Positions 1-17,446 of a DNA stretch of 17,446 nucleotides are shown one piece after another. This DNA is from Oopsacas minuta (Eukaryota; Animalia; Porifera), in contig JAKMXF010000097.1 in the NCBI GenBank assembly GCA_024704765.1, positions 7,651 through 25,096 of the forward strand. Reading direction: 5' to 3'. The notes beneath the pieces were generated by a model that did no database searches, had not been told where the DNA came from, and was given only the letters and a program-made list of their open reading frames with translations. The position numbers and the translations under genes are program-made. Each line of letters begins with the position of its first letter. The stretch's first letter is position 1.

Positions 1-1076
1 AAATGGTGTAGAATACCGAATCAGAGATGAAATAAATAAAAGTGCTAATTATTGAGGTAAACAAGACAATAGTTCAATAGAAATTCGGGAAGAAATCAGG
101 AAGAAATAGAAATGAATAAAAATTAGATAATTTTTAATAAATTATAAATGAGAATTTCCAAACTTATGGGTGTATAAAAATTGAAATTGTCATAGATTGT
201 GAATATGCGAAGTATTTGGAAAAATTGATATTATCCATTGGCTATGTACGGTATCGGCTCTTCTAATTGTATCAATTTTTCTTTTCACTTCTTTTATACC
301 TATATTTACCCACACATAATGAAAACTGGAACTTATACGTCTTGCCGTTAGTTTCATATTAAACATAGTATTACGATTTGGGAGCATATCTAATTGAAGA
401 GCATTGACGAAATGTCCGAGCATAAAGGAAGAAATATTTCGAGTTTTAAAATTGTATCAAAGAAATTGTAATGTTTCAAACTTGAATTGATAAAGTTACT
501 AATCATACTTATTACTTTGATTGGTGAGAAGACTGCTGACATGTTTATGGCAGTTCAAAGAGAGTTTGAAGTATTTCAAGGATCGGATTTCTTTGGAGTG
601 GAATAATTAAAATTAACAGTGAAAAATACAAACTCTATGAACAACAAATACACATGCAATGTGATCATAACTATCCTATTTTATCGCATCGTTTGAAAAT
701 GCAAAAAATGGAAAGAAAAATCGATAAACACCCATTCAAATGTACAAACCACTATTGCTCAATATTTTTTGGGCCAAATAGCTTCCTTAAACACTTCCTG
801 TGGACGAAGAAACGCCCCCCAGGGTGAGAAAACTGGTATAAACTAATAAATACCAAGTTAGAGTATATTAAATGATATAATTAGTTCAACAACAGCAGAA
901 TCCATAGAAATAACTAATACAAAATATATAGCAATGATTATATCTATTGTATCAGTACGAAGATTAGAAATATACAATTCAAAATATTACAAAGCTTTAG
1001 AGAAATAAGTTTAGTGCAAACTACAAATAATATACAAATGAGGGCTGACCTATAGCTATCGGATATTTACATAGTT

Positions 1077-2339
1077 TCAAGCAAAATACACTCCTTTGAG
1101 AATCTCATCGTGTATCTGTACTAGTTTAGACGGGTTTAAAGTTCTCCGCTCATCGTTTGCAAACTCAATACTAATAAAGAGATTCATTAATATATTTGCG
1201 AGACAATAGTCACCATTAAAATGCATTGGGTATGACATTTGTAACACTTTCTCAGAGATGAACCAAGATTTCTCATAAATAATTAGAATAATTCCGAGTT
1301 CAACAACTTTACATGAATATACTAAGGTTGAATATTATGAATAACTTACCCATTTTCATCTCTCTCCATCAAATGGTATCTACCTCTGAAAGCAACTAAA
1401 TGCGCGTAATAAGCAGGAGCTGGAATAGATACAGATCTGGTACACACTACATATGTATGACATAATTGGTAAGTAAGAGATTGTATCTCATCAGCTGTAA
1501 AGTTGTTCCCACCACATAATACGTGGCAATGAGATGGATGAGATGCTCCCTATAAGAACAATATTTAATTGAATTATCGGTTGAATATAAATTGATCGAA
1601 GGTCCAATTGAAACAGTAGGACAGCGGTCCCAAACATTTTCACCCGAGGACCCATATGCCATTTCAACACATGCTGTTGAACTCTTCACATAAACTTTTG
1701 AGATCCTGTGGACCCCTGTAGTCATCTGTGGACCACGCAATGATCCACGGACCCGCGGCATTAAGAATTTCTACCTATCAAAATCAATAAGATCGCTAAA
1801 ATATAATCCAATCATATAACTTAATACAAAACTTATATACATATTCCAATATTTGTGTAAAATAGTTCCAAAAATAAGAACTTACAAATATTTACATATA
1901 ACGCTAGCGTATCCATAAATGAAGCAAATTATAATCTACAAATTACAACTACAGATGCCATAAATAATTAATATTACTTTCCTATACACATACCTGAATA
2001 CCTGAATGACTACACAGATAGAAATCAAATTCTGTTGGATGAGTAATACCTACATCTACTGTAGTACCAGCTGGGATGTTACCAGATTTACCACATTGAT
2101 CTTCCTTCTCTGGACAGAACGGACGGGTGTGGTATCTCTTCTGGACGATAACGAATGTAAATCCAGGCTTGTAGTCAGCTTCTAGTTTAATACAAGCTTC
2201 TCTTACGGCTCTCAATTCTTGATTAAATCAATAGATCTCGGACCATAGCAGCTAACTCTGCTATTATCTCTTGTCTGTGTTGCTGTACAAGGACTGAAGC
2301 ACTGTAAGGACTAGGATGAGCGTCCATACTACCAACCAA
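1077..2339 (-). pseudogene. AGO: Argonaute (AGO-clade) PIWI-domain 3' exons, copy 1, disrupted
   Basis: Exon 2339..2225 reads [38 protein letters not shown] and is fused out of frame to exon 2224..1994 [37 protein letters not shown]...[30 protein letters not shown]|GT. Exon 1549..1350 reads [60 protein letters not shown]. The terminal exon 1170..1077 ends ...VQIHDEILKGVYFA*. AG/GT sites and intron phases (0, 2) are mutually consistent, and the motifs match the human AGO C-terminus. Confidence 0.95.
1622..1770. mobile_element. Degenerate hAT-like MITE remnant in an AGO intron (truncated counterpart ~9666..9800)
   Basis: Starts CAGCGGTCCCAAAC, similar to hAT/Charlie-type termini, and has repeated G(T/C)GGACC motifs. 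No clean right TIR or TSD found. Confidence 0.35.
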
Positions 2340-2440
2340 CTAACAATACAAGAAAGAGTGTAAATAGCGAATTGAAATGTTATAACGAGTATTCGCGACT
2401 CAGCCACTGCTGACCTTGTTGAATATTGGAGAGAATAATA

Positions 2441-2735
2441 CAGGTAACAGTGGATACAGGTAGCAGTGGATACAGGTAGGAGTGGATACAGGTAACAATG
2501 GATACAGGTAGCAGTGGATACAGGTAGGAGTGGATACAGGTAACAATGGACACAGGTAGCAATGGATAGCGGTAGCAGTGGATACAGATAGCAATGGATA
2601 GCGGTAGCAGTGGATACAGATAGCAATGGATACAGGTAGCAGTGGATGCAGGTAGCAGTGGATACCGATACCAGTGGATACAGATAGCAGTGGATACCGG
2701 TAGTAGTGGATACAGGTAGCAGTGGATACAGGTAC
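2441..2735. repeat. 16-bp minisatellite (CAGGTAGCAGTGGATA), ~18.4 units
   Basis: 18 full units plus CAGGTAC counted by hand, with variant units (..AACAAT.., GCGGTAG.., CAGATAG..). Confidence 0.97.
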
Positions 2736-3026
2736 CAGGGGCACCTATGGTATGCCAGTTACAAGAACCATGGATATGTACTAATTGAATAATGATGTCT
2801 GCCACAATGCTACACATATTCTCACCTATACACGATTTGTAAAGACGGAAACTAAGAAAGGAAAGTTAGGGAAAAATACAAAATAAAATGTTTGTATTTA
2901 CCAAATTATTATCCAACAAATCACTTCATTTATTTATATAAAAGCTAGCAATATATTTTGACCGGGTTAGTCTTATCGTAGTCTTATCGCCCCTCCTAGG
3001 GCTAAGGAGTATGGGAGTCGGGACTC

Positions 3027-4168
3027 TCAGGCTCTTGAAGACATTCTTGGACTCACTGCGTCGCTCTTCCGCCAGAATAGAGCAAAGCTCTTCCTCTTGG
3101 CTTTCTTGTCAGAATTGGAGGATTCCTGTTGAGACACTAAATCGTTAAGTGACGCCTAAAGGAGTTTCCTAGTAACAGAAACATTCTGAGGAATTTGTAG
3201 AGTACTAACATTTTATGATAATCATATGAGTTATCAAAATATAGGACAGCTCCGTGGAGACCTCTGGACGCAATGTTACCAGTGTAACCACCCAGATCAA
3301 TGGGATGTAACCATAAGGAAATCTGTCTATTGGACCAGAAGGGTAGGTTTGCCCTGTCCGTGAATGATTGTCTCTGCTTGTTTTCTAGAATATTCCTCTC
3401 ATAATTGAGGGAACGGAGAGCAACATTGCCTACTGGAGACTATTCCTGTGAGAACTCTCAATCATTCCTAAACTGGTCCTCAGTTCCTTCTTAGACAGAT
3501 GTTCTAGCACCATTCCGTCTACACAGCATTGTCGAGAAATAATAGGAAAATAAATAACAACAAATACACGTGTTAACTAACAAGTAAATAACAACAAACC
3601 TGAAAATATTGCTGTACTGAGTTAGACCCAGAGAAGGCAGCCAATGAGAAGCTATCCATTCGTAGTCAACAGCTCTGTAGGTGGGGTAGAGACAAGGGGT
3701 ACTAGCTTTAGAGAGACCTGCCCTCTCTTGGACAGCATTCATGGGGTTGAGTCTCAGGAGAGGCTGTAGTATTCCCAGTTCTTGTTCGTAGTCCCTCTTT
3801 CCAAATGACAGGAGCATAGGAACTGTTTTGCATTGCAATCCGACTGCATTACTCACTGACACCGGTAAACCACTGCTCCACCTCTACCCACGCCTGAAGA
3901 GCCTCTGGAGATGATAACAGGAATTGTGTGTTCTCTCTTTCCACAAATGAGATTGAGGCCTGTAGTCTAGCTAGTCTCCCTTCTGGTGCCTCACACACTC
4001 CTAGAGAAGAGGGGATCTCTTTTGTATCCGGGGACTTAGTTTCCCTAAAGGAACTGACTATCCACCGGATAGAGGATTTCCCCTTGAGTGATTTCTTGCG
4101 GGAGCGGGACATGTAGAGCTTGGGAGCTCCTGGCACCAATTCTGTCCTCTCAAAGAGGCACTCATCCA
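3027..4168 (-). pseudogene. PPFIA: Liprin-alpha-like C-terminal triple-SAM region, two exons, copy 1, disrupted
   Basis: Exon 4168..3600 contains LQAWVEVEQ / ELGILQPLLRLNPMNAVQE (SAM1) and YEWIASHWLPSLGLTQYSNIFR (SAM2; liprin-alpha HEWIGNEWLPSLGLPQY). Exon 3532..3027 contains QCCVDGMVLEHLSKKELR...LQ*...RGLHGAVLYFD (SAM3). Lesions: +1 frameshift at ~3867-3869, TAG at 3432-3430, acceptor reads CG at 3534-3533, and further 1-nt deletions. Confidence 0.85.
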
Positions 4169-4829
4169 CTATATGTCAGTTATCAGATATTGTGGTAGCG
4201 GTTATTTACAGTTGTGTTCGCCTAATAGCAATATTGCTCAATTTGTAAGTTACTTTTAGCCCCTAAGTGAGTATTTCTTGTATATTTTGTTCCTCTAATA
4301 GCAAGTTAGCTTATTAGTTACCAAATTCCATTCAAAATGCGACTTCTTATTACTCACACACCACTCCTTATTTCAGAGGTAGCATTCTCTGGTAGACCTA
4401 GAGCTACCACTTTTATATGCATAGCAATCCTCTGTTACTGTTCCTGTAGACTTCAAGTACTTCCAAACTTCTCAAATGCATCCACCTTCACAACCCATAT
4501 AGTATATAGAATAAGATATTCACATACTTGGTGATTAGCCTCCCAAGATTCATGGATTATCCCCGAATTTTCATACAAATCAAAGGAAGAAATTGATTTT
4601 TCCAAATAATTGTTTCAAATTGCTATTCAAGGATGGAAACTTGGAAATACCGAAATTTAACAAAGAGATTATACAAATAGGTTTGCCAGTAATTAACTGT
4701 CACATTTTGCTAGTTTGTATACTGCCTTTATCTCCCTATAATACTTCTGATTTCCTTCTAGAATCCTTAAATTCAACCATTTCAACCCTAAACACCACTT
4801 CATTCACTCCAAAATAAACAAATGTTTCA

Positions 4830-5420
4830 AGCAATTGTCAACATACTAGACATATTGTATGGGCAATACGATTTAGTGCTAGAATTCTCATGTTTCACAT
4901 CTACTGAGTCTATTCCCTGTCTCACAGTAGAGACTGTACCTAGTATATTCTTGTTGGCTAGGCCTATGCCCAACATAGCTTGTTCCCTCTCCCATCTGCA
5001 TTTTTCCAACAGCAGCTCCTTCATTACTACGTAGCACTTTTCTATACGGCCCTGTACACAATTTCTCTATCTCTATCCTGTAGCAATTGGTGTGAAGGAT
5101 CCAGTGATGAGATAGCTCAGAATCAATAGTTCTGAGCTCTTCGTGCTCTTTCGAGCCATCCAATCCCAAGTCTGTCTGTACAAACTGGTTAGCAGAGGGA
5201 GGATACTGAATGGAAGAGGAACTAGGTGGATCTTGCAGCTTCTGTACCTTCAATGATGGATAGTAAGAACTGGTCGGAGCACTACCCGAGGCCCTTGATT
5301 TGGGTGTGGTGTAGGGTTGGGAGGGAGACTCGAGAGCATCTGAGTATGAATATTTGCGTTTACGAGTTGATTTGAGACTAGTATTGCTAGGGGTGGGGGT
5401 AACGTCATGTGATGCATTGA
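4830..5420 (-). pseudogene. TLK: Tousled-like kinase-like N-terminal/coiled-coil fragment, frameshifted
   Basis: S/P/T-rich stretch with TRKRK, then FVQTDLGL...ILHTNC, and in a shifted frame RIEKCYVVMKELLLEKCRWEREQA...LGTVSTVRQG. These recall TLK TQSDLT...LLRANC...MSKKLLIEKSKQEK...LGHFTTVRHG. No kinase domain is seen. Confidence 0.55.
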
Positions 5421-5507
5421 GTTCTCCTCACACCAGTCTAAAGTAGATGTGGTATTGCCCCAGTGTCCCTTGATGTGGTATTTATCCGTCCATACATTAG
5501 GAGCCAT
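5421..5507 (-). pseudogene. ACER3: Alkaline ceramidase 3-like first-exon fragment (29 codons)
   Basis: ATG at 5507 gives MAPNVWTDKYHIKGHWGNTTSTLDWCEEN, matching the ACER3-type motif GYWGPTTSTLDWCEENY. Homology stops abruptly after EEN. Confidence 0.8.
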
Positions 5508-6794
5508 TATTAGGAATCCTAGATCTAAACAAGGAGATAAAAATAAAAAAATAGTTAATGAAGGGAATGAAGAACTATAGGTGCTATAGTACAATAGTAA
5601 ACAAAAATAAAACATAAATAAGATTACATGCAATGTAGAGATGTCAACAAATGAAATGCTATAATATATAGGAATTAGTTAGTGATAGAATGCTAAACTA
5701 ACCAATGAATAAGAATCTGCTGTATTGAACCTGAACCTACGGAGTCCACTAAGTGAAGATTAAAGTAATCTTGTGGTAAGTATAAGTTAATCGGGTCAAA
5801 ACGGAGCTTCGAAGTTACAAATCAAGAAAACTGTTGAAAGGATTTAATAGACTATAGAATATTAAGAAAAGGAAATAATCTGTGTAAGATAGAAATAATG
5901 GAAATAATCAATATACTAATGTTCAGGTACGGGAATTTTTGAGTTGTCTGTGATTATCATATTGCTTATACCATTCTTTTTCATGTAATTAGCTTTCTGA
6001 CCCTCCTCCAGTCATGTGTATTTCCTGTATATGTATAGCAGCATATATCATCTCCTGCATGTCTAACACCTTATAAAGTTCGGTATGGACTCCTCCTCCT
6101 GAAAACATCAACAAAATAATAACGAATATAATTGTAACGAAAATAAACTATACCATCAGCTGCGCGACAGCTTAGTGCTCAGGTTAGAAAACAATAAATT
6201 CATATATGATTAATCCAAAAGTGTGAAAATCAAATACAGCATATGCGTTATAATTAGAACGTCATGATGACGTAATCATTCCATGCTTTTGGTCAGAATC
6301 ATGACATCAGGACATGTGGTACCTTGAGGAGTACCTCTGTTCAAAAATTTCAAACTTCTATCAACTATATTTGCTGAGCAGTGTTGAATAATGTGATTTT
6401 TGAAAATCAAAAAGGTGACAATTAACTCACAGTTTAGTCATAGGTCTGAATTCTCCTTCAAATACTCGAAATGGTCCGAGGCAGGACCAAAATACCCCCC
6501 CTGTATGCCAAAAATCAGCCCTCGAGGTTCTCCAGGTTCCTCAATCAATTCTGGACATACTAACATATATATGCACACTACCCTGTGTAGCCGTTAGAGC
6601 AAGCCTGTATTTACATTTTGAAATTTGGCCAATTTGTTTACTTTATATTCATAAAAACAACAATATGATTTCTCTTCGTAAGATCATCTGTTGTATGTTG
6701 CTAATGGTATCAGAAACACAAAGAATATTCCATTATTTCCTAATTAGTTATGATTTATAGTCTATTGTGTGTGTATTTAGATATTAAGCGTATT

Positions 6795-7006
6795 AAACAA
6801 TACAAATACTTTTTCAAGTCAATTGAAGGATAATATTCGTAGAATCAATCTAGATACAACATTCATATATTTTAGCAAACCATAAAACATATCTTTGAAA
6901 TATCAAAATATTGTTACTTAGTAAACCATAACATTAAAATTCAAATCTTTATAAGATTAACCTTGCTCAGTTTAGCAGCGCCAAATACTCAATTTGGACG
7001 GTAACG
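6795..7006. repeat. ~200-bp dispersed direct repeat (partner 8905..9079)
   Basis: Shared AAACAATACAAATACTTTTTCAAGTCAATTGAA...CTCAGTTTAGCAGCGCCAAATACTC. This copy is ~35 bp longer internally. Confidence 0.9.
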
Positions 7007-7078
7007 ACAGATAAAGGTTGAGAAACGCTGGAGGGTTCATCTCACTATTTGAATGACCATTTAATAAACAGAACTTAC

Positions 7079-7246
7079 CGCTACGCTAATGAAGTAGGGG
7101 GTGTTGGCAGTATGCTTCCGCTTTCGAGAGCCAGAAAGGGCTGCCACTGGAGGGGGAGGAGGAGTTGGAATCGGAATCTTTGTGGAATTTGATACGTATT
7201 CAAGGTTTTTTGTGGGAATGAATGTTGTGTTGTGTGAGAATTCATT
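7079..7246 (-). other. Possible orphan exon, proline-rich with a basic motif
   Basis: 56 open codons (...KIPIPTPPPPPVAALSGSRKRKHTANTPYFISVA) ending at a GTAAGT donor at 7078. This frame is not in the ORF track, and no clear acceptor or ATG was found. Confidence 0.3.
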
Positions 7247-7968
7247 TTATTTGCAAAGGAAATGGAAACAAAATTTGGCATAAATAGTAGCATTATTGCT
7301 ATTTATACTCTTCACAGGCAATTTGCTGCATTGCATTGCAAATTGGATGTTTACCTAGGGTTTCGTTACTTGTACCGATGTGTGTATAAATACACGTGAT
7401 ATTATTTATTGAGAGTTTCAATTATGACTCTCAAGATAGTTCCTTTTGATTACTTTCTCCACGCTCAAGTTAGCTTTGTGCACCGTGACAATTATACGTT
7501 ATTAACTACTAAGAATGTATCTCATAAATATTTAACATTAAACTTTGATAGGTTTCTTACAATAAGAAACTGTCTTATGGAAGTATATTAGTAAAGTTGA
7601 TTTGTGCTAATTCACGCTATCCTTTACAGTTTTCATTTAATTACATTCAGATTGGAAGTTGAGTGTTATAACTTGCTATTAGAACCCTTTCCGACATGTA
7701 ATGGCTCTATATATGCTCTGGAAATTTGCCCATAGAGTTAAATTTCTTAAAGGTGCCAACAGCGGGGGCCTTGGGAATTTGTCGCGGATCTCCCCCTCTC
7801 ATCGGCCTAAGAAGAATTCGGAAACAATTAGTCATAACTATTCCTGGTACATTTTGTATTATTTGGTCCCGTATCGCCATACAACTTTAGATATAATAAA
7901 ATATTACGTTGTACCACTTTTGAAATGGATGTGCCGCACTTGAAAATAATGTAGTTATCAAAACGCCT

Positions 7969-7969
7969 N
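7969..7969. other. Ambiguous base (N), possible assembly join
   Basis: Single 'n' between the two duplicated blocks. Confidence 0.9.
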
Positions 7970-8361
7970 GACAACTATTCGCACTCTCAGGGGTAACATC
8001 GATCCTACTGGGCTCTGATTTCGTCACGGTTACGAAAAACGAGGATCAAGAATGGCCAGAAATGAAACCAGATATATACTGTGTAATTATGGATTTTTTT
8101 CATAGCTTCCCTTCCTGTAACATCTTATATAATATTTCAAACATTGAATAATTGGAGAACAATTGTACTGGAGTTTCATGCAAATTAATAATTGGAGAAA
8201 TTCCTATTTACAATTTGTATATTATTCCTATTTAAGTCACATTGAAGTGTCTTAAACTATTTTAATTATTCTTAGACAATTCGTTAGTGGATTTTGGGAA
8301 AATTTTAACGCAGAATATAATGAAGGGATTATCAATGATCAGTAAGATAGATGAAACTAAC

Positions 8362-8712
8362 TTTCTTGGAATCTTCAATTAGGATATTTTTCTGAGTTCC
8401 ATCCGTTCTTACCAACGTTTTACTGTATACAATCTTTGGTTTATTCAACTTGTCAACTCCCTCTTTCTCTTTCTCTTTCTCCTTCTCCTTCTTCTCGAGG
8501 AATGCATTCAATAGCTCTTCTTTAAACTCATAGGCTGTATCCATAGGGGGCTTACCCAGGGGGTAATGCTGATGAGCAGATGTAGAATTTGAGGGATATT
8601 GTTGAGGAGAGGTGGAGTTGAAATTATTTGATGGTTGGCACTGGGGTTGTCTATGTTCCCCTGTGGAGGAGTTAGGATTTTTATGTGGATATTGCCTGGA
8701 ATACGGATCCAT
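8362..8712 (-). CDS. Probable first coding exon of an unidentified gene (Q/P/S-rich, KE tract, possible ubiquitin-like FERM/RA start); no downstream exon found
   Basis: ATG at 8712 and 117 codons to a phase-0 GTTAGT donor at 8361. The end, DGTQKNILIEDSKK, recalls talin F1 DGTVKTIMVDDSKT (weak). Confidence 0.45.
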
Positions 8713-8798
8713 TGTAGAGAGATATGTGACAATGTATCTATAAGCTAATTATGCAATCATTTTATCAATCAAACTATTTCTAGCCAATATAGTAACTC

Positions 8799-8799
<1 letters not shown>

Positions 8800-8829
<30 letters not shown>
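8800..8829. repeat. (TAA)10 microsatellite
   Basis: Perfect trinucleotide run. Confidence 0.95.
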
Positions 8830-8830
<1 letters not shown>

Positions 8831-8904
8831 CAAGCATAAAGCAACAGGAATTCTGATTTCATAGCTCATACAAGAAATGAGTCAGTTATAAACTTTTAAA
8901 ATTC

Positions 8905-9079
8905 AAACAATACAAATACTTTTTCAAGTCAATTGAATGATAAAATTAGTAGAAACAATCTAGATACAACATTCATACATTCTAGCAAACCATAAAACAT
9001 ATCTTTGGAAATTCAAAATTTGTATAAGAATAACCTTACTCAGTTTAGCAGCGCCAAATACTCTATTTGGACGATAACA
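8905..9079. repeat. ~175-bp dispersed direct repeat (partner 6795..7006), ending ~30 bp before position 9110
   Basis: Direct alignment by eye with 6795..7006. Confidence 0.9.
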
Positions 9080-10038
9080 ATTATACTTACGTTGACATTT
9101 GAAGAGAAGAAATGGTGTAGAATACCGAATCAGAGATGAAATAAATAAAAGTGCTAATTATTGAGGAAAACAAGACAATAGTTCAATAGAAATTCGGGAA
9201 GAAATCAGGAAGAAATAGAAATGAATAAAAATTAGATAATTTTTAATAAATTATAAATGAGAATTTCCAAACTTATGGGTGTATAAAAATTGAAATTGTC
9301 ATAGATTGTGAATATGCGAAGTGTCTGGAAAAATTGATATTATCCATTGGCTATGTAGGGTATCGGCTCTTCTAAATGTGTCAATTTTTCTTTTCACCGC
9401 TTTTATACCTGTATTTACCCACACATGATGAAAACTGGAACTTGTACGTCTTGCCGTTAGTTTCATATTAAACATAGAATTACGATTTGGGAGCATATCT
9501 AATTGAAGAGCATTGACGAAATGTCCGAGCATAAAGGAAGAAATATTTCGAGTTTCAAAATCGTAGTGTTTCAAACTTGAATGGATAAAGTTACTAATCA
9601 TATTTATTACTTTGATTGGTGAGAAGACTGCTGACAGGCTTATGGCAGTTCAAAGAGAGTTTGAACATTTTCACCCGTGGACTCATATACCATCTTAACT
9701 CATGCTGTGGACCTCTTCACAGAAACCTTTGAGATCCTGTGGACCCCCTGCTGTCATCTGCGGACCACCAAATGATCCACGGACCCGCTGCATTAGGAAT
9801 TTTTTACCTATTAAAATCAATAAGATCGCTAAAATATAATCCAATAATATAACTTAATACAAAACTTAATACAAAACTTATAAACGTATTCCAATATTTG
9901 TGTAAAATAGTTCCAAAAATAAGAACTTACAAATATTTACATATAACGCTAGCGTATCCATAAATGAAGCAAATTATAATCTACAAATTACAACTACAGA
10001 TGCCATAAATAATTAATATTACTTTCCAATATACATAC

Positions 10039-10848
10039 CTGAATACCTGAATGACTACACAGATAGAAATCAAATTCTGTTGGATGAGTAATAGCCACAT
10101 CTACTGTAGTACCAGCTGGGATGTTACCAGATTTACCACATTGATCTTTCTTCTCTCAACAGAACAGATGGGTGTGGTGTCTCTTCTGGACGGTAACGAA
10201 TGTAATTCCAGGCTTGTAGTTAGCTTCTAGTTTACTACAAGCTTCTCTTACTGCTCTCCATTCTTGATTCAATACCTGTGACGTAAATAGACTCATTACA
10301 TCATAACTATCATACTTTCAACCCTCTCAGAATCTTGCAATTTACAAGAAATTTGGGAAAGATTTGCAATTATCGTACTTGATTCCCCAAATAATCGCCC
10401 AAAATGCTATTCATGAAAAATTTTTGAAATTCCGGGAAATGATTATAGAGGTTGATAAGAATGTAAGATATAAAAGTAGTTGAATCGAATACTGAACATA
10501 ATTAGTTTGCATATTTGGATATCCCAAAAGGTATTGCAGAGATTTTAACAAGGGGGACAGGGACCTAGGGTCAAATCAAATATTCCATTGTTATTGTATA
10601 TAGTATATTCTTATAGTTAAACGGCGATAACAACATAGCATGACTGTACTGACCTGTTGAAATTGTCCTTCACTGACTCCATCCCGATAGAATATAATCC
10701 TCTGAGGCTTAAACCTGGCAAATTTGTAGAATTAAATCAATAGATCTCGGACCATAGCAGCTGACTCTGTTATAATCTTTGGTCTGTGTTGCTGTACACG
10801 GACTGAAGCACTGTAACGACTAGGACGAGCGTCCATACTTCCAACCAA
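10039..10848 (-). pseudogene. AGO: Argonaute PIWI-domain exons, copy 2, with two in-frame stops
   Basis: Exon 10848..10654 (65 codons) reads [64 protein letters not shown]|GT, with TAA at 10734-10732. Intron 10653..10276. Exon 10275..10039 (79 codons) reads [54 protein letters not shown]...SHSGIQ|GT, with TGA at 10158-10156. The last two exons are deleted. Confidence 0.95.
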
Positions 10849-10946
10849 CTAACAATACAAGAAAGAGTGTAAATAGGAATTGAAATGTTATAACGGGTAT
10901 TCGGACTCAGCCACTTCTGACTTGTTGAATATTGGAGAGAATAATA

Positions 10947-11049
10947 CAGGTAACAGTGGATACAGGTAGCAGTGGATACAGGTAACAATGGATACAGGTA
11001 GCAGTAGATACTGGCAGCAGTGGATACTGGTCGCAGTGGATACAGGTAC
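10947..11049. repeat. 16-bp minisatellite, ~6.4 units (paralogue of 2441..2735)
   Basis: 6 full units plus CAGGTAC with matching flanks. Confidence 0.95.
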
Positions 11050-11322
11050 CAAGGGCATCTATGGTATGCCAGTTATAAGAACCATGGATATTTACTAACC
11101 TAGGAGGGACGATAAGACTACGATAAGACCTACCCGGTCAAATTATATTGCTCGCCTTTATATCAATAAATGTAGTGATTTGTTGAATAAGAATTTGGTA
11201 AATACAAACATTTTATTTTGTATTTTTCCCTAACTTTCTTTTCTTAGTTTCCGTCTTTACAAATCGTGTATAGGTGAGAACATGTGTAGCATTGTGGCTA
11301 AGGAGTATGGGAGTTGGGATTC

Positions 11323-12465
11323 TCAGGCTCCTGAAGACATTCTTGGACCCACTGCGTCGCTGTGCCGCCAGAAAACAGCAAAGCTCGTCCTCTTTGCTTT
11401 CTTGTAGGAATTGGAAGATTCCTGTTAAGACATTAAATCTTTAAGTGACGCCTTAAGTAATTTCCTAGCAACCGAATCATTTCGAGGAATTTGAAGAGTA
11501 TTAGCCATTTTATGACAATCATGTGAGTTATCAAAATATAGGACAGCTCCGTGGAGACCTCTGGACGCAATGTTTCCAATGTAACCACCCAGATCAATGG
11601 GATGTAACCATAAGGAAATCTGTCTTTTGGACAAGAAGGGTAGATCTGTCCTGTCCGTGAATGATTGTCTCTGCTTGGTTTCCAGAATATTCCTCTCATA
11701 GTTTAGGGAACGGAGAGCAAACATTCCCTACTGGAGACGATTCCTGTGGGAACTCTCAACCATTCCTAAACTGGTCCTCAGTTCCTTCTTAGACAGATGT
11801 TCTAGCACCATTCCGTCTACACAGCATTGTCTTGAAATACCAGGAAGGTAAATAACAACAAATACACGTGTTAACTAACAAGTAAATAACAACAAACCTG
11901 AAAATATTGCTGTACTGAGTTAGACCCAGAGAAGGCAGCCAATGAGAAGTTATCCATTCGTGGTTAACAGCTCTGTAGGTGGAGTGCAGACAAGGGGTAC
12001 TAGATTTAGAGAGAGCTGCCCTCTCTTGGATAGCACTCATGGGGTTGAGTCTCAGGAGAGGTTGTAGTATTCCCAGTTCTTGTTCGTAGTCCCTCTTGTC
12101 CATTGACCGGAGCATAGGAACTGTTTTACATTGCAATCTGACTGCATCTCCCACTGACTCCGGCAAACCCCTGCTCCACCTCTACTCACGCCTGAAGAGC
12201 CTCTGGAGATCATAACAGGAATTGTGTGTTCTCTCTTTCCACAAATGAGATTGAGGCCTGTAGTCTAGCTAGTCTCCCTTCTGGCGCCTCACACACACCT
12301 ACAGAAGAGGGATCTCTTTTGTACCCGGGGACTTAGTTCCCCTAAAGGAACTGACTATCTGTCGGGTAGAGGATTTCCTCTTGAGTGATTTCTTGCGGGA
12401 GCGGGACATGTAGAGCTTGGGAGCTACTGGCTCCAATTCTGTCCTCTCAAAGAGGGACTCATCCA
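11323..12465 (-). pseudogene. PPFIA: Liprin-alpha-like triple-SAM region, two exons, copy 2, disrupted
   Basis: Exons 12465..11898 and 11830..11323. Contains NHEWITSHWLPSLGLTQYSNIFR|QCCVDGMVLEHLSKKELRTSLGMVESSHRNRLQ*GMFALRSLNYER...SRGLHGAVLYFDNSHD...LQIPRNDSVARKLL. Lesions: TGA 12188-12186, +1 frameshift at ~12165-12167, TAG 11730-11728, premature TAA 11427-11425. Confidence 0.87.
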
Positions 12466-12756
12466 CTATATGTCAGTAATCAGATATTGTGGTAGCGGTT
12501 ATTTACAGTAGTGTTCGCCTAATAGCAATATTGCTCAATAAGTAAGTTACTTTTAGCCCCTAAGTGAGTATTTCTTGTATATTTTGTTCCTCTAATAGCA
12601 AGTTAGCTTATTAGTTACCAAATTCCGTTCAAAATGCGACTTGTTATTACTCAAACACCACAGATAATGCATATTGATTACACTGTGCTTTATAGTGTAT
12701 TCTAAACAATATACTAAAGTAGTATTACGAATGGAAATATCAAAGAGTTCAAATAT

Positions 12757-13296
12757 TCATTTAAATTTTCGTGATCGGGTTATCGGTCCTGTAGATTGCT
12801 TAGGTGTTTGTGTGATTTTAGAATTCACATTTCTACAACAATCAGGCATTGGTACAATATTCTTGGAGCGGATAGATCCTTGCCTAATTAAAGCATCTAA
12901 ATTATCTTTCCCCTCAACCATCACCATGTACCTCTCAACTCTCCCAAGAGAATTGCGTTTTCCCAATTTCAATTTGGCTCTCTTGGGAGTCTTTAGAGGA
13001 GATGAAAAGGTAACCTCCTTGATATTATAATTCCGAAACTTCCCTTTACCTCTGAGCGAAGACGTAAATGTTCTCATCTCATTTTCCTTTCGATTCCTCT
13101 CCCAAACATCCACTACTTCTGGGAATGAGTTCCCCAGCGAGTGGAGCTCATCTATTCGTATTGTGAGGAACTCTTTGGGTAGAGTCAACTTCAATCGAGT
13201 CATTTTGTCTTCAAAATCTTGAATGAGAGACATGAAGTCCTGCTCCAGATCTTTCATATGTCTCTCTCCCTCAAGAATAAATCTAGAACTAAACAA
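12757..13296 (-). CDS. Borealin/CDCA8-like protein (N-terminal helical motif), 5' end uncertain
   Basis: 179-codon open frame. FILEGERHMKDLEQDFMSLIQDFEDKMTRLKLTLPKEFLTIRIDELHSLG resembles the Borealin N-terminus [50 protein letters not shown]. Basic S/T-P-K tail. Candidate acceptors (TTTAG) lie just upstream. Confidence 0.5.
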   Translation of the reverse strand: MFSSRFILEGERHMKDLEQDFMSLIQDFEDKMTRLKLTLPKEFLTIRIDELHSLGNSFPEVVDVWERNRKENEMRTFTSSLRGKGKFRNYNIKEVTFSSPLKTPKRAKLKLGKRNSLGRVERYMVMVEGKDNLDALIRQGSIRSKNIVPMPDCCRNVNSKITQTPKQSTGPITRSRKFK

Positions 13297-13494
13297 TTGT
13301 TTGATGTGAGTTTGCTAAATTTAGAGAAATAATATATTCATTAAGATGGTTTATTGGTTTATTATGTGTTCTATGTAGGGACAGTTTATATTTTCGAACA
13401 CAGTTTCCGCTAATCTGACTAAGTAAGTTACAACACAAGACAAGACATGTATTCTATATATTAAATAAATAATACTGAATATTCAGTCAGTTCC

Positions 13495-14759
13495 CTAAAA
13501 GAATTGTAGACAATTAGTATTCTTATGACACGCAACTATAATGTGTCCTGTGCTGTCTAGTGCTATTCCACATGGATTAATGAACTCCCCGTTACCCTGA
13601 CCTTCCTTCCCAAACTTGTGTATCTGTTCTCCTTCCTGATTGAATACGTACACACAGTGATTATTGTAGTCACTCATAATGATGTTATAGTCTCTGTCTA
13701 TGTCGAAACGTAATGGAAAGTTTGTTTGTTTACCATCACCTCGAGTTATCAGTCTGTTGGTTAGAACGTGATCTGAATTGAACACAAACATACACGGACC
13801 ACTATCATCTAGCACCAATACTCTGTCTCTTGTAACCTTGACGTCACGTGTATACTTAAACAAGTCTATTCCTAGCATGGAATGGAACTTGAGTTCTTGA
13901 GTTAAGATTTGAACTCTTTTATTCTGAAAATCACATACGTACACATTGCTATTTCTATTAGAGACATCTAGACCCAGTGGAACGTCAAACTGAGCTTCTC
14001 CATTCCCTTTACTGCCAACACTCTTGATTAGTTTTCCTTCTAGCTCGTACTTATTAATGCAATGACCATACAATTGTATAACAAACACTTTATTTTGAAA
14101 TATACAGATTCCTATTGGTCGGTTCATCTTCTCACTGAACATGAAGAGATAGTCACCGTTACAGCTAAATACTTGCACACGATTGTTGTCACGATCCGCT
14201 ATGTAAATATTTCCAGTTTGGTAATGTACTGCTATATACCTCTGGGATTGTTCAGTTCTCCTGGAGCTTTGTTGACTGATCTCTTACAGCAGTAAGCAAT
14301 AGGCAGCTGTTTAGCCTTGTAGTTAGGTACAACAGGCTTCACTTGAGGAGGGAAGGTGCGGGTGGGAGACAAGTTAGTCTGACTGTTAAGCTTAATGCTC
14401 CCTAGCTGTTGTATCTCAGTCTCGAATTGATCGTTCCATTCAAATGCAATACTACTGTCTGTATCAGCTATTAGTTCTGCTATCTTCTTGTTGATTACTG
14501 ATATCACTCCATCTAGCGTGTCTTTCAGTTCGTTATCTGTTAATGTATCTGTTGTCATTGATTTATTTGCATTCAAAGTGTCAACTAATTTATTCATTTT
14601 CTGAGTTTTGTTATTATAATCTTTCTCGATTTGATCAATACGAGAGAGGAGGATACTCTCTCTGAGTTGTAGAGCTTCATGCGACCTCTGGAAGCAGTCT
14701 CTAATCTTACTTCTACTCTCTTTTATCTGTTCAGGGAAATTTGTTTGTTTGCTAGCCAT
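13495..14759 (-). pseudogene. Intronless coiled-coil + NHL-repeat beta-propeller protein (TRIM71/NHL-like, no RING/B-box), split by a 2-bp frameshift
   Basis: ATG at 14759 (MASKQTNF...) coiled-coil ORF runs into GELNNPRGI*. Removing TA at 14234-14233 restores GIAVHYQTGNIYIADRDNNRVQVFS and joins ORF 13495..14178, which has NHL repeats (FDVPLGLDV..VYVCD, FINPCGIALDSTGHIIVA). Confidence 0.9.
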
Positions 14760-15070
14760 CTGATACAATTGAAATATATAAGTTTCGTTTAACTATAGTA
14801 ATTTTGTAATATACTATTTATAGCTGTAAGAAGAGGTCCAATTACTTAAGTACTGAGCATATATGCAATGACATTTGATATAGTAATAGTGTTACTTAGT
14901 TAACATTTCCTCAAAGTTGTATACTCAACAGAAAGATTGCTAATCAACTTTGTATCTATTTTAACTTGTATCAGACATCAACTAAGCCCTAGTTAACTGC
15001 TCAACAGCTGGAGTCGCGTGTATAGTTAGTACAAGAAAACTCTGAGTTTCTTCAATAAGAAATACTAAGA

Positions 15071-15151
15071 CATTGGTTCTCAACCTTTTTTCTCCCACGG
15101 ACATCTTTGGTCCATTTTATGGGGTCGCGGACCCCAAGTTGAGAACCACTG
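15071..15151. mobile_element. 81-bp hAT (Charlie-type) MITE
   Basis: Ends are CATTGGTTCTCAAC and GTTGAGAACCACTG (13/14 inverted match). The 8-bp flanks TACTAAGA / CTCTAAGA match 6/8 as a TSD. Internal hairpin GGGGTC-GCG-GACCCC. Confidence 0.8.
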
Positions 15152-15361
15152 CTCTAAGACAACATCGAGTGGGTGTGTGATAAGTTGACCTAAATATGAG
15201 ATATAAGTTGACCGAAAAAATAGGTACGACCTGCTGTAGAACTTAAAGTTGTATGCTCTTAAACTACGAGGCCCTTTCAGTTTCGATTTTACTACACTTC
15301 TCTATATCACCACCATTAAAATAAAGTTACTACCACACTAGTGTATCACGGTCTTACATTA

Positions 15362-15599
15362 TCGTAAACTGGGGCTACTTTGGCCCACTGGGTTTGCTTT
15401 AGCCCAAATATCAAAGTTCAAAGCAACTAGATTAGATTCAGTATTATACTTGAATATGACTTGCCAGATTTTTAACGAATTTTCAAATATTGGTAGTAGA
15501 CAATTTCGAATACAAATACAATATCTATTCGATACGTAAGCAAATTTCAATATTTGGGCTAAAGCAAACCCAGTGGGCCAAAGTAGCCCCAGTTTACGG
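15362..15599. mobile_element. 238-bp Tc1/mariner-pogo-type MITE
   Basis: 50-bp TIRs at 15362..15411 and 15550..15599 (49/50 match), flanked by TA on both sides (15360-61, 15600-01). AT-rich non-coding core. Confidence 0.9.
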
Positions 15600-16199
15600 T
15601 ATTTATTGTATTTATACTTATCACATAGATACAGTGGAACTCGGATTGTATTATAAGTAATTAAAATTTGGTTTGAAAGATGTATGTGTTAACCAAGTGA
15701 TCCGAAACTGACAGTAAAACCAAAATTGGGAAGTCGAAAAAACATGATTAGACGAAGTGATAATGTATTCTATTCCTGTATGATTATTTTTCCCTATCAT
15801 TGCTCGTTAATTCAGGTGCGAGAATATATGTGAATATTCTTTCATTTTCAATGCCAGTAGTCTGCCAAGGCTGGCTACGCCACCAGGCAAATCCTAATAT
15901 GTAGTCAACTGATCGAATGTTCGGATGTTAAGTGTAATATTTGTATTATTGTTGTTGTTATTGTTATATTGTATTGTGGAAATAGCAGATACAGACTTCC
16001 TGTTATAAATATTTCGTATTTTCTAGTACAGGTCAAGAAATCGTGGAATCTAAAGATGATAATGTGAGTTAGATACACGATAAATACTTAATAGGAAATT
16101 AATATGACTCCTTTATTATAAAAGTATTGAATTTATTTTACTTTATTATTCTATTATTAGAATGGAATTAAATCGCTTTTGAATTGCAAATAATGTTCA

Positions 16200-16331: not shown

Positions 16332-16952
16332 AAGCAGATATATTATGCCAGCAGGATTATAATTTATGCAAAGCTAAGCCTTGTAATAATACTTTTAGAC
16401 AGATTCAAATCGCGTTTGAGATAGCTGAATTGGAAGCGCAACAACGATGTTGAAGATTCCAGTAAGAATTTAACAATTTTGTATTTTTATGTAACAAATT
16501 TGATCAATAGTGTTAACCCAATATATTTCATGTTTTCTTCTGGAATATTCTACTTTATTTATAATTTTTATTATTAATTATTTTTTGAAGGTTTGTGCTA
16601 ACTTAGGGATGGATAGTTCTGTACTAATTTCATTATTAACGATTCATCGTGCGTAGTATCAATTCGCCAGGGCTGTCTATCTGTAATTCCTGCGATTTCT
16701 AACAATGAAATAGAATTTCTCACTAGTTATCATATCTATATTATTAAATCTCAATTGTTGTTTGTCCGTTGCCAAGGAAAGGATTTACGTTATGCAATTT
16801 TGAAATTGCCGCATAACTATGCATTTATCGTGTTTACCAAAGGAGTAAATAGCTTTTGCACTAGCACAAGATAACTATCTCGTATGTGAGGCTAGTGTAG
16901 ATGAGGAACTCTCTCCATCGTTTAAGTGGCTAATAGATGGAATCCTTTGCAG

Positions 16953-17446
16953 GTGAATATAATGCCTTATCACCGCTATAAATATACTGAGAGTGATCAT
17001 CCTCCCATTTATCCCTCCTCCTCTCCCACTCTCTCTCCTCCTCGTGTTAAACAACAAGCTCGTGCTCGTATCAATGAGGTGAGTAAAGAGATTGATACTC
17101 TTAAGCTGGAACGGTGGGCAGATGCTAAAACTAGTGTTACTCAAGAGGTATTTCCCGTCTAATAACCTCTCACATGTAACTAGATAGCTAAATACCTTAT
17201 GAATGTTATTCTAAATATTTTGTCATTTAGAAATTCGCGGAATCTCTGAATATGAGCCCTTCTTCTCGAGCTAGTTCTCCTGACAGAATACAACAAGAAG
17301 TACATTATGCTTATCTAATTTGTTTGTAGATATGACATATAATGATGACTTTTCCTTACAGTTATGCGAGAAAGAGAAAGAACTGGAATCTGTTGAAAAT
17401 GAACTAACTACTCTCAGACAGAATAATATAGAATTAGACAGTCAGT
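16953..17446 (+). CDS. Multi-exon coiled-coil protein, partial (continues beyond the window)
   Basis: Exon 16953 (after CTTTGCAG; in-frame ATG at 16962) to 17147|GT, exon 17231..17299|GT, exon 17362..>17446 after TTTTCCTTACAG. All are phase 0 and splice to ...KTSVTQE|KFAESLNMSPSSRASSPDRIQQE|LCEKEKELESVENELTTLRQNNIELDSQ. Confidence 0.75.

Follow-up and report, generated by a model that had tools for sequence, protein, structure and literature searches.

Broken pieces of at least six unrelated genes in a probable segmental-duplication mosaic of the sponge Oopsacas minuta

Gene fragments in the window

The window, by which we mean the whole stretch of 17,446 nucleotides that was analysed (C97:7651-25096, in an assembly of 61.46 Mb and 365 contigs from the glass sponge Oopsacas minuta, each contig being named here by C and a number), is a patchwork, as had been proposed from the letters alone. 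The broken pieces found in it come from at least six unrelated genes and comprise Argonaute (AGO), liprin-alpha, cathepsin B-like, TLK, ACER3, putative Borealin-like and NHL fragments, and a block of about 4.3 kb is present twice (1-4364 and 9110-12661), with an identity of 92-97%. The following features were delimited:

148-2427, minus strand: AGO 3' fragment, copy 1; last exons and introns, 89-93% identical to C335:194667-197343
2438-2738: 16-nt minisatellite ATACAGGTAGCAGTGG; 18.8 units (TRF)
2795-4203, minus strand: liprin-alpha 3' fragment, copy 1; SAM exons with a short intron, 85-88% identical to C288:540258-541737
4203-4364: filler J, ending in a CA-rich run (..CACACACCAC); from junction alignments
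4362-4852, minus strand: cathepsin B-like fragment; a partial exon (4364-4519) with intron, 90% to C335:193065-193559
4852-5420, minus strand: TLK piece, an N-terminal exon fragment; 82% to C358:45462-46049
5420-5726, minus strand: ACER3 upstream region and first 30 or so codons; cut mid-exon and fused out of frame to the TLK piece
6261-6572 and 6731-7005: two dispersed repeats; many matches of 78-93% on unrelated contigs
7260-7969: 709-bp repeat; 99% to C55:142484-143192, terminating exactly at the N at 7969
8107-9110, minus strand: blocks R/S, found ahead of the AGO fragment in most copies; 97-99% to C41:37698-38701
9257-10933, minus strand: AGO 3' fragment, copy 2; Piwi matches at 10036-10281 and 10648-10848, tblastn with the source ORF
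10944-11048: minisatellite ATACAGGTAGCAGTGG, copy 2, a copy-number variant; 6.6 units (TRF)
11099-12500, minus strand: liprin-alpha 3' fragment, copy 2; from similarity to copy 1 and source, and inversion analysis
12500-12661: filler J, copy 2; from junction alignments
12709-13270, minus strand: putative 5' exon fragment of a Borealin-like gene, incomplete at either end; 86% to C320:21980-22538, within a 245-aa ORF
13252-16117, minus strand: NHL-repeat gene (coding part 13495-14768) and 1.35-kb upstream module; 88% to C324:320868-323750

Exons were searched singly against domain and structure databases. In the first AGO fragment, parts of the PIWI model were found at 1370-1555 (model positions 240-301) and 1961-2227 (167-252), together with a stub of the exon for positions 100-167 at 2226-2339, and around 457 bp found in the second copy are absent at 2222/2228. 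The second copy retains the 100-167 exon (10648-10848), and a deletion corresponding to 579-1632 has removed its last PIWI exon. A complete multi-exon AGO gene is located at C335, from 196026 to about 201950, with the cathepsin gene directly downstream.

The liprin exons match liprin-alpha-2 in the PDB (E 2.9e-10), and a SAM domain is present in the source ORF, of 514 aa, at whose residue 287, within a large exon, the fragment breaks off. The source lies on C288 and C363, two nearly identical contigs, a near-identity that points to haplotypes left uncollapsed in the assembly and hence to a copy count that is too high. In the second liprin copy the first 200 bp (11099-11298) are inverted with respect to the source and to the first copy, in which the segment 2801-3000 keeps the source orientation. 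The minisatellite and its right flank derive from sequence 3' of the liprin source gene, as revealed by homology to this flank on C288. A dispersed repeat family (C52, C69, C79, C37) is also built around the same 16-nt unit; the minisatellite as the mark of a liprin-carrying transposon was considered and rejected, the flank matching the liprin source gene and not the dispersed family. Filler J has only short matches (60-78 bp) elsewhere in the genome, and downstream of it the sequence varies among copies.

The cathepsin piece had been overlooked in the initial annotation. Its exon part (4364-4519) is cut mid-exon and carries two stops, the whole fragment is 97% identical to C55:89657-90147 and C332:124190-124680, and the source ORF resembles cathepsin B-like proteases. 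The identity of the TLK piece comes from its source, as a downstream ORF at the C358 locus matches TLK2 (5o0y, E 3.4e-5); a PDB search with the window ORF 4827-5024 gave no match. The ACER3 start, at about 5420-5504, matches residues 8-25 of PDB 6g7o (E 7.5e-4), and positions 1-24 of the Ceramidase model were matched in a sister copy of this piece; sisters lie at C55:123458-123744 and C41:47582-48006, and a fuller gene at C303:72-985.

The assignment of 12709-13270 as Borealin-like comes from its language-model neighbours (Atlas, Borealin_N, 0.92), which point weakly in this direction, and Pfam and PDB searches gave no match for it. The NHL gene has more than 40 paralogs, among them an intact 422-aa relative at C14:18586-19851, and its coding part in the window is frameshifted by indels at 14188-14239. 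With regard to the stretch between both halves of the window, a second copy of the repeat 6731-7005 is found at 8905-9078, directly ahead of the second AGO fragment, and a Pro-rich ORF in blocks R/S (8332-8712) is partly C222-like (8523-8792, 88% to C222:1212816-1213086). A simple transposon insertion at 7180-8106 was rejected, given that an unrelated 318 bp is replaced there and that the scaffold N lies inside. In ten further ORFs of the window, of which eight lie on the plus strand, no Pfam domains were found, and an Rfam search gave no match.

Every recognisable piece had been placed on the minus strand, and Pfam, PDB and source-locus homology agree with this inside the window. A TLK-like exon fragment is found on the opposite strand in sister copies elsewhere, so that co-orientation is a property of the window and not of the whole repeat family. 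The homology of the AGO and liprin fragments to their source loci continues across introns, and the copying took place therefore at the DNA level, as had also been claimed; the intron loss typical of retrocopies was not detected in these two, whose introns are kept and contiguous with the source loci. Source genes that are intact or fuller than the fragments were located elsewhere for AGO and cathepsin (C335), liprin (C288/C363), TLK (C358), the Borealin-like gene (C320) and ACER3 (C303). These parental genes are not adjacent in the same order at one locus, an arrangement that would have spoken for simple duplication plus deletions: the sources are on different contigs, with the sole exception of cathepsin beside AGO on C335.

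A single chimera, dead before its amplification

The core formed by AGO, 16-nt minisatellite, liprin and filler (the cassette) has the same junctions in 11-13 copies on around 10 contigs. The liprin-filler junction was found in 11 copies and the AGO-minisatellite junction in 12, and the source genes align only as far as the breakpoints. In a tree of the liprin block, all 10 copies form one clade (support 100/100, stem of 0.08), with the source gene outside. Copies are 88-99% identical among themselves and 85-93% identical to the source loci on C335, C288 and C320, with 82% for the TLK piece on C358. Stops and frameshifting indels are present in every copy, many of them common to all, and substitutions affect the three codon positions about equally (123/115/148 in AGO). 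From the single clade and the common stops and frameshifts it follows that the chimera arose a single time and was dead before its amplification began. The suggestion in the initial annotation of a composite unit that was later duplicated is thus upheld, while that of exon shuffling into a working gene is contradicted by the stops and frameshifts common to all copies.

The junctions carry short microhomologies, of around 4 bp (AGAA) between AGO and minisatellite, around 9 bp between the Borealin-like and NHL pieces, and 2-3 bp at each of two internal deletions. The filler, 160 bp long, ends in the CA run, a breakpoint hotspot, and mid-exon breakpoints are found in liprin, cathepsin, ACER3 and the Borealin-like gene. 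Beyond the insert the AGO intron does not continue, and a simple insertion is therefore not what happened.

The copies end at different points: in window-equivalent positions, their left ends are at 1, 46, 1586, 1834 or 10602, and their right ends at 3991, 4364, 12667, 13091 or beyond 13270. Their flanks are common to nested subsets, in a comparison of copies other than those on C294, C264 and C302. Since single Ns lie at several block boundaries, a scaffold join accounts for some of this seeming variation in the ends. At least four unit types were distinguished (J|K, J|B|X, L3991|C55-like and X|AGO), all of which return to the same R-S-AGO order. The arrays are in tandem on C97, C31, C113 and C41, and inverted on C31, with arms of around 6 kb that are 91-95% identical. 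On C55 and C332, which are large and N-free, the order is cathepsin, AGO-minisatellite-liprin, X-cathepsin, a layout that would fit a tandem unit based on the cathepsin-AGO adjacency of C335.

Origin of the mosaic

The region is probably a non-functional, macrosatellite-like mosaic of segmental duplications. It has multi-kb copies of high identity that keep introns, sources elsewhere, junctions with microhomology, filler or mid-exon breaks, and a reduplication of the whole mosaic. Genomic DNA pieces of several genes were copied, with arbitrary and often mid-exon cuts, and may have been joined through end-joining or by template switching during replication. The core chimera (end of an AGO intron, minisatellite with liprin 3' exons, 160-bp filler and Borealin-like exon) had one origin, probably beside a cathepsin-AGO segment that was itself a duplicate. 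It would have given a unit of 7-10 kb, and in a genomic region prone to duplication this unit would then have multiplied through tandem and inverted duplications, unequal exchange and secondary deletions, the fragments having presumably no gene function and decaying neutrally. Against this reading stands the same orientation of all window pieces, expected by chance in around 2-3% of cases over 5-6 independent joins, and predicted by Helitron capture but not by random end-joining; the Helitron Rep in the genome, the KDZ/Zisupton-like remnant at four sisters, the fragmented assembly around the copies, the probable uncollapsed haplotypes and the crudeness of the terminus scan described below also count against it.

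The capture of host fragments by a Helitron or Pack-MULE-type element, put forward in the initial annotation, was not supported, as no termini were detected, copy ends are inconstant, shared flanks are nested, and the junctions show microhomology or a CA run. It is rather unlikely that a non-autonomous Helitron/Helentron or a Pack-type element (e.g., KDZ/CACTA-like) captured the fragments and spread the composite, its ends being blurred later, even if co-oriented, intron-bearing fragments of several genes in a dozen copies on about 10 contigs are what such an element would leave. A scan of both window strands for a Helitron hairpin and CTRR end (a crude script: perfect stem of at least 6, at most 15 nt from CTRR+T) found none, although Helentron-type ends escape such a scan, and neither 5' TC nor 3' CTRR motifs were found at the recurrent block boundaries. 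No terminal inverted repeats surround the mosaic, the only inverted repeats of the window being the 200-bp liprin segment and a 242-bp MITE-like element at 15360-15601, and Pfam detected no transposase or Rep domain in 20 window ORFs of both strands. The genome does contain 43 matches to Helitron_like_N (PF14214), with a few open frames of 200-300 aa, and the only one on cassette contigs is at C55:938619, around 840 kb from the C55 copy. A KDZ/Zisupton-like transposase remnant adjoins four sister copies (E 1.1e-4, under the Pfam cut-off), and the KDZ remnant and a putative pogo-like ORF, read from its sequence, lie beside the C113 and C31 copies. The end of block P (7059-7179) was considered as one terminal inverted repeat and a 5.3-kb block that adjoins sister copies as the other, and this was rejected, as BLAST found no similarity between the two. 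The same two termini on all copies at unrelated sites were not observed: the ends are unlike among copies, some of them at scaffold Ns, and the flanks are common to nested subsets. The minisatellite is shared with a dispersed family, but its flank is that of the liprin source gene, and the AGO intron is not resumed after the insert.

A somewhat smaller chance is given to an assembly effect, by which the two-copy tandem on C97 would come from scaffolded repeat contigs or uncollapsed haplotypes, the chimeric cassette itself being real. The assembly was scaffolded and gap-filled (PMC10280926) and C288 is nearly identical to C363; a run of 1775 Ns directly precedes the window, the window itself contains a scaffold join, one N at position 7969, exactly where the 709-bp repeat shared with C55:142484-143192 (99%) ends, and single Ns also lie at block boundaries on C113, C41 and C358. 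However, the order cassette-K-P-R-cassette is N-free on C31 and in part on C113, diverged copies have the chimeric junctions in common, and copies that differ by 3-10% are not one sequence assembled twice. Very improbable is a functional locus, with a single transcription unit that runs through the co-oriented fragments and serves either as a chimeric gene or to supply small RNAs directed at the source genes (AGO, liprin). The co-orientation in the window, the inverted cassette pairs on C31, which could form double-stranded RNA, and the ACER3 or Borealin-like 5' exon upstream of 3' exons in transcript order are in its favour, against common stops and frameshifts, even substitution over codon positions, out-of-frame fusions (ACER3-TLK) and the lack of an Rfam match. 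The more specific idea that the one-strand cluster and its inverted sisters are transcribed into small RNAs against Argonaute, liprin and other sources is hardly to be expected; it would represent a pseudogene-derived small-RNA locus in a sponge, feeding back on the RNAi machinery.

Comparison with known systems

The mosaic reveals no new mechanism. In macrosatellites, and in the segmental-duplication mosaics found in pericentromeric and subtelomeric regions of primates, fragments of unlinked genes are juxtaposed and the mosaic is then reduplicated, in two steps. The sponge region resembles them in its multi-kb units that are 88-99% identical, its intron-bearing fragments in tandem and inverted arrangement, its microhomology and filler junctions and its pseudogenic content, and differs in the compact 61-Mb genome, the short contigs, the small units of 7-10 kb and the co-orientation of fragments in the window. 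FoSTeS/MMBIR are template-switching rearrangements with templated insertions at duplication junctions; similarly, the junction of the AGO intron-to-cathepsin duplication is filled with short segments of other loci, with mid-exon breaks and 2-9 bp of microhomology. Here, by contrast, such a mechanism is suggested by junction anatomy only, and the inserts, of 0.5-2.4 kb, come from different contigs. Helitron capture in maize and bats and the Pack-MULEs of rice also place co-oriented, intron-containing fragments of unrelated genes in an amplified unit. Several such fragments per unit and Rep remnants in the genome are in common with them, but 5'-TC/3'-CTRR ends, hairpin, terminal inverted repeats, target-site duplications and constant ends are absent, and the copies occur together in tandem or inverted arrays and not as discrete, scattered insertions.

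For gene prediction the region is a trap, able to produce spurious AGO, liprin, ACER3 and NHL models and inflated family counts, and caution is advised with the published scaffolds at C97, C113, C31 and C41. On the preferred reading as a segmental-duplication mosaic, a very compact genome of an early-branching animal would hold a young, actively rearranging duplication hub that makes and multiplies chimeras of gene pieces, and such a hub could provide raw material for new genes.

Gene fragments in the window

The genome assembly searched comprises 365 contigs (denoted C plus a number), with 61,460,524 bases in all. As listed below, matches in Pfam, in the PDB and at source loci confirmed the initial annotation of the window as a minus-strand mosaic of gene fragments, to which a cathepsin B-like piece, previously overlooked, was added. 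Exons were searched singly, not as a joined spliced model.

Features of the window
1370-1555, 1961-2227, 10036-10281, 10648-10848, minus: Argonaute (AGO) 3' exons, segments of the Pfam PIWI model
In each copy: 16-nt minisatellite (18.8 units in copy 1, 6.6 in copy 2)
In each copy, minus: liprin-alpha 3' SAM exons (PDB liprin-alpha-2, E 2.9e-10)
4364-4519, minus: cathepsin B-like exon piece
4852-5420, minus: Tousled-like kinase (TLK) N-terminal exon piece (source locus on C358, where the next ORF matches TLK2, E 3.4e-5)
~5420-5504, minus: ACER3 start (PDB 6g7o residues 8-25, E 7.5e-4)
8523-8792 (part), minus: Pro-rich ORF (88% identical to C222 sequence)
12709-13270, minus: Borealin-like exon (language-model neighbours only, 0.92)
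13495-14768, minus: NHL gene, broken by indels

A block of around 4.3 kb is present twice in the window (1-4364 and 9110-12661, 92-97% identity), with a third copy upstream on the same contig (C97:318-5068). The Borealin-like identity stands weakly, having language-model neighbours but no match in Pfam or the PDB. With respect to its intact 422-aa paralog (C14:18586-19851), the NHL gene shows indels at 14239/14238, 14195 and 14188 and a stop in the paralog's frame; a paralog on C324 is likewise split, and the family comprises over 40 members, 83-92% identical. A further ten ORFs of the window, of which eight are plus-strand, had no Pfam domain. The window also carries a 242-bp MITE-like element at 15360-15601, with 59-bp terminal inverted repeats 93% complementary and a match of 74% identity, on the opposite strand, in the region of an NHL paralog (C324:321426-321666), and a repeat of about 890 bp at 16421-17308, with two overlapping ORFs without Pfam match and 95-96% identical copies at C302:533266-534161, C1:104646-105541 and C55:107770-108632.

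Source genes and chimeric junctions

A complete multi-exon Argonaute, whose N, PAZ, MID and PIWI exons were read directly in ORFs, was found at C335:196026-~201950 (minus), with a cathepsin B-like gene directly downstream. Window 148-2427 matches C335:194667-197343 at 89-93% identity including introns, and window 4362-4852 matches the cathepsin B-like region at C335:193065-193559. The liprin source maps to C288:~540100-544800 (C363 carries a nearly identical copy), and its 3' flank already has the minisatellite. What was captured of it begins at the left edge of the minisatellite and stops at residue 287 of an exon ORF of 514 aa. The other sources are a 245-aa ORF for the Borealin-like piece (C320:21905-22639), a TLK locus at C358:45.4-47.2 kb and the fullest ACER3 at C303:72-985. 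The possibility that the source genes lie adjacent in the mosaic order at one locus was tested and does not hold, as they are on separate contigs, the cathepsin-AGO adjacency of C335 being the sole exception. Three introns of the intact Argonaute (C335:198160-200504) carry copies of one short repeat, with ORF peptides like SNYRGSFSFDITEVDCI, that is probably a small intronic mobile element. At C222:1212002-1212741, transposase remnants adjoin the sequence from which window 8523-8792 derives; a weak match to the Tc3 HTH (E 0.0015, not reaching the cut-off) and our reading of the ORFs label them Tc1/mariner-like.

The cassette (AGO 3' exons, minisatellite, liprin-alpha 3' exons and filler) was found to be a composite unit that was then duplicated, as initially proposed. 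The junction between liprin exon and filler occurs 11 times and that between AGO intron and minisatellite 12 times, on C97, C31, C113, C41, C55, C358, C294, C264 and C332, and the source loci align only as far as the breakpoints. A maximum-likelihood tree built on the liprin block places all ten cassette copies in one clade (support 100/100), on a stem of 0.08 from C288/C363, from which they radiate at 0.02-0.08. The AGO block has almost no stem; therefore, this piece was either added later or subsequently converted. Stops and frameshifting indels appear in every copy, many common to several, and substitutions are about even across codon positions (123/115/148 in AGO); judging by these sequences, the chimera was already dead when it multiplied.

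The AGO intron/minisatellite junction has about 4 bp of microhomology (AGAA). Liprin is cut mid-exon and followed by the 160-bp filler, which ends in a CA-rich run. Beyond this run three copies continue into cathepsin and six into the Borealin-like piece, while that of C358 diverges 6 bp on; in the C320 source, a (CA)n run directly precedes the captured piece. The Borealin-like/NHL junction shows about 9 bp of microhomology, and it must be secondary, since the C31 sister copy extends further along the C320 source than the window copy. Copies 1 and 2 differ by two internal deletions, each with 2-3 bp of microhomology, that produced complementary losses of PIWI exons. The larger subfamily is marked by a 200-bp inversion with small end deletions, copy 1 retaining the source orientation.

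Assembly joins and family architecture

The published O. minuta genome (365 scaffolds, ~61 Mb, 36% G+C, 34% interspersed repeats) was scaffolded with SSPACE and GapFiller (PMC10280926). C97 is 25,096 bp long; the window reaches its end coordinate, 25096, and is immediately preceded 5' by a run of 1775 Ns. A single N at window 7969 (C97:15619) marks the exact end of a 709-bp repeat 99% identical to C55:142484-143192, and the 927 bp around it stand in place of unrelated 318 bp of the sister copies; therefore, a scaffold join links the two halves of the window. Other single Ns lie at C113:20407, C41:41157 and 42501, and C358:12928 and 16032, several exactly at repeat-block boundaries. Most likely they are closed scaffold gaps, the joins there being assembly decisions and not sequenced junctions. 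The tandem order is supported by C31, which is free of Ns. C288 and C363 differ by only ~0.5% in their liprin 3' regions (C288:535001-549444, C363:145001-155000), and C332:88401-90500 shares 96% identity with the minisatellite flank of C288; these are likely uncollapsed haplotypes, or else copies of the source locus duplicated very recently. Because pairs as similar as C288/C363 point to uncollapsed haplotypes, distinct paralogs may number closer to 6-8 than to 12.

The units fall into at least four types, all returning to the same R-S-AGO order (P, R and S, blocks between the window copies; X, flank block of sister copies).

Unit types
Filler/cathepsin-P-R-S-AGO: C97, C31, C113
Filler-Borealin-like/X
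Liprin cut at 3991, joined to C55-like sequence: C41
X/AGO from window-equivalent 10602: C113, C31

The large, N-free C55 and C332 read cathepsin ... AGO-minisatellite-liprin-(filler-Borealin-like)-X-cathepsin. A tandem unit would have arisen from a C335-type adjacency of cathepsin and AGO, its duplication junction being filled by the liprin, filler, Borealin-like and X pieces, and the filler/cathepsin type would be a later deletion. On C31, two inverted cassette units (C31:46213-52330 and C31:64950-70545; ~6-kb arms, 91-95% identity, 12.6-kb spacer) could fold into a long hairpin if transcription ran through both.

Segmental duplication and transposon capture

The mosaic of dead gene fragments in the window is real and was amplified recently, and it adds an example to a known kind of structure. 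Its best fit is probably segmental duplication with junctions made by end joining or template switching, which leaves the co-orientation of the fragments without explanation. Capture of gene fragments by a transposon, such as a Helitron or a Pack-MULE, would account for it, but appears improbable: the window scan revealed neither a hairpin plus CTRR end on either strand nor terminal inverted repeats bracketing the mosaic, Pfam searches of the window ORFs detected no Rep or transposase domain, and the ends vary among copies. Helitron Rep remnants do exist in the genome (43 matches), the sole one on a cassette-bearing contig being 840 kb from the C55 copy. Also in favor of capture, a 5.3-kb block by four sister copies has a transposase remnant of KDZ (Kyakuja-Dileera-Zisupton) type (E 1.1e-4, not reaching the Pfam cut-off), and after it on C31 there is a 465-aa ORF that we read from its sequence as pogo/Tigger-like.

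This 5.3-kb block (C113:15125-20406 and C31:52331-60849) opens with a fragment of a TLK-like exon, in opposite orientation, and also holds a PHD-finger ORF. A dispersed repeat family is built around the same 16-nt unit, although the flank of the cassette minisatellite is that of the liprin source and not that of the family. Members at C52:11901-13800, C69:26001-27900, C79:12901-14700 and C37:42101-43900 are conserved in their flanks, over at least 355 bp to one side and 800 bp or more to the other, and the family is therefore an element with an internal tandem array.
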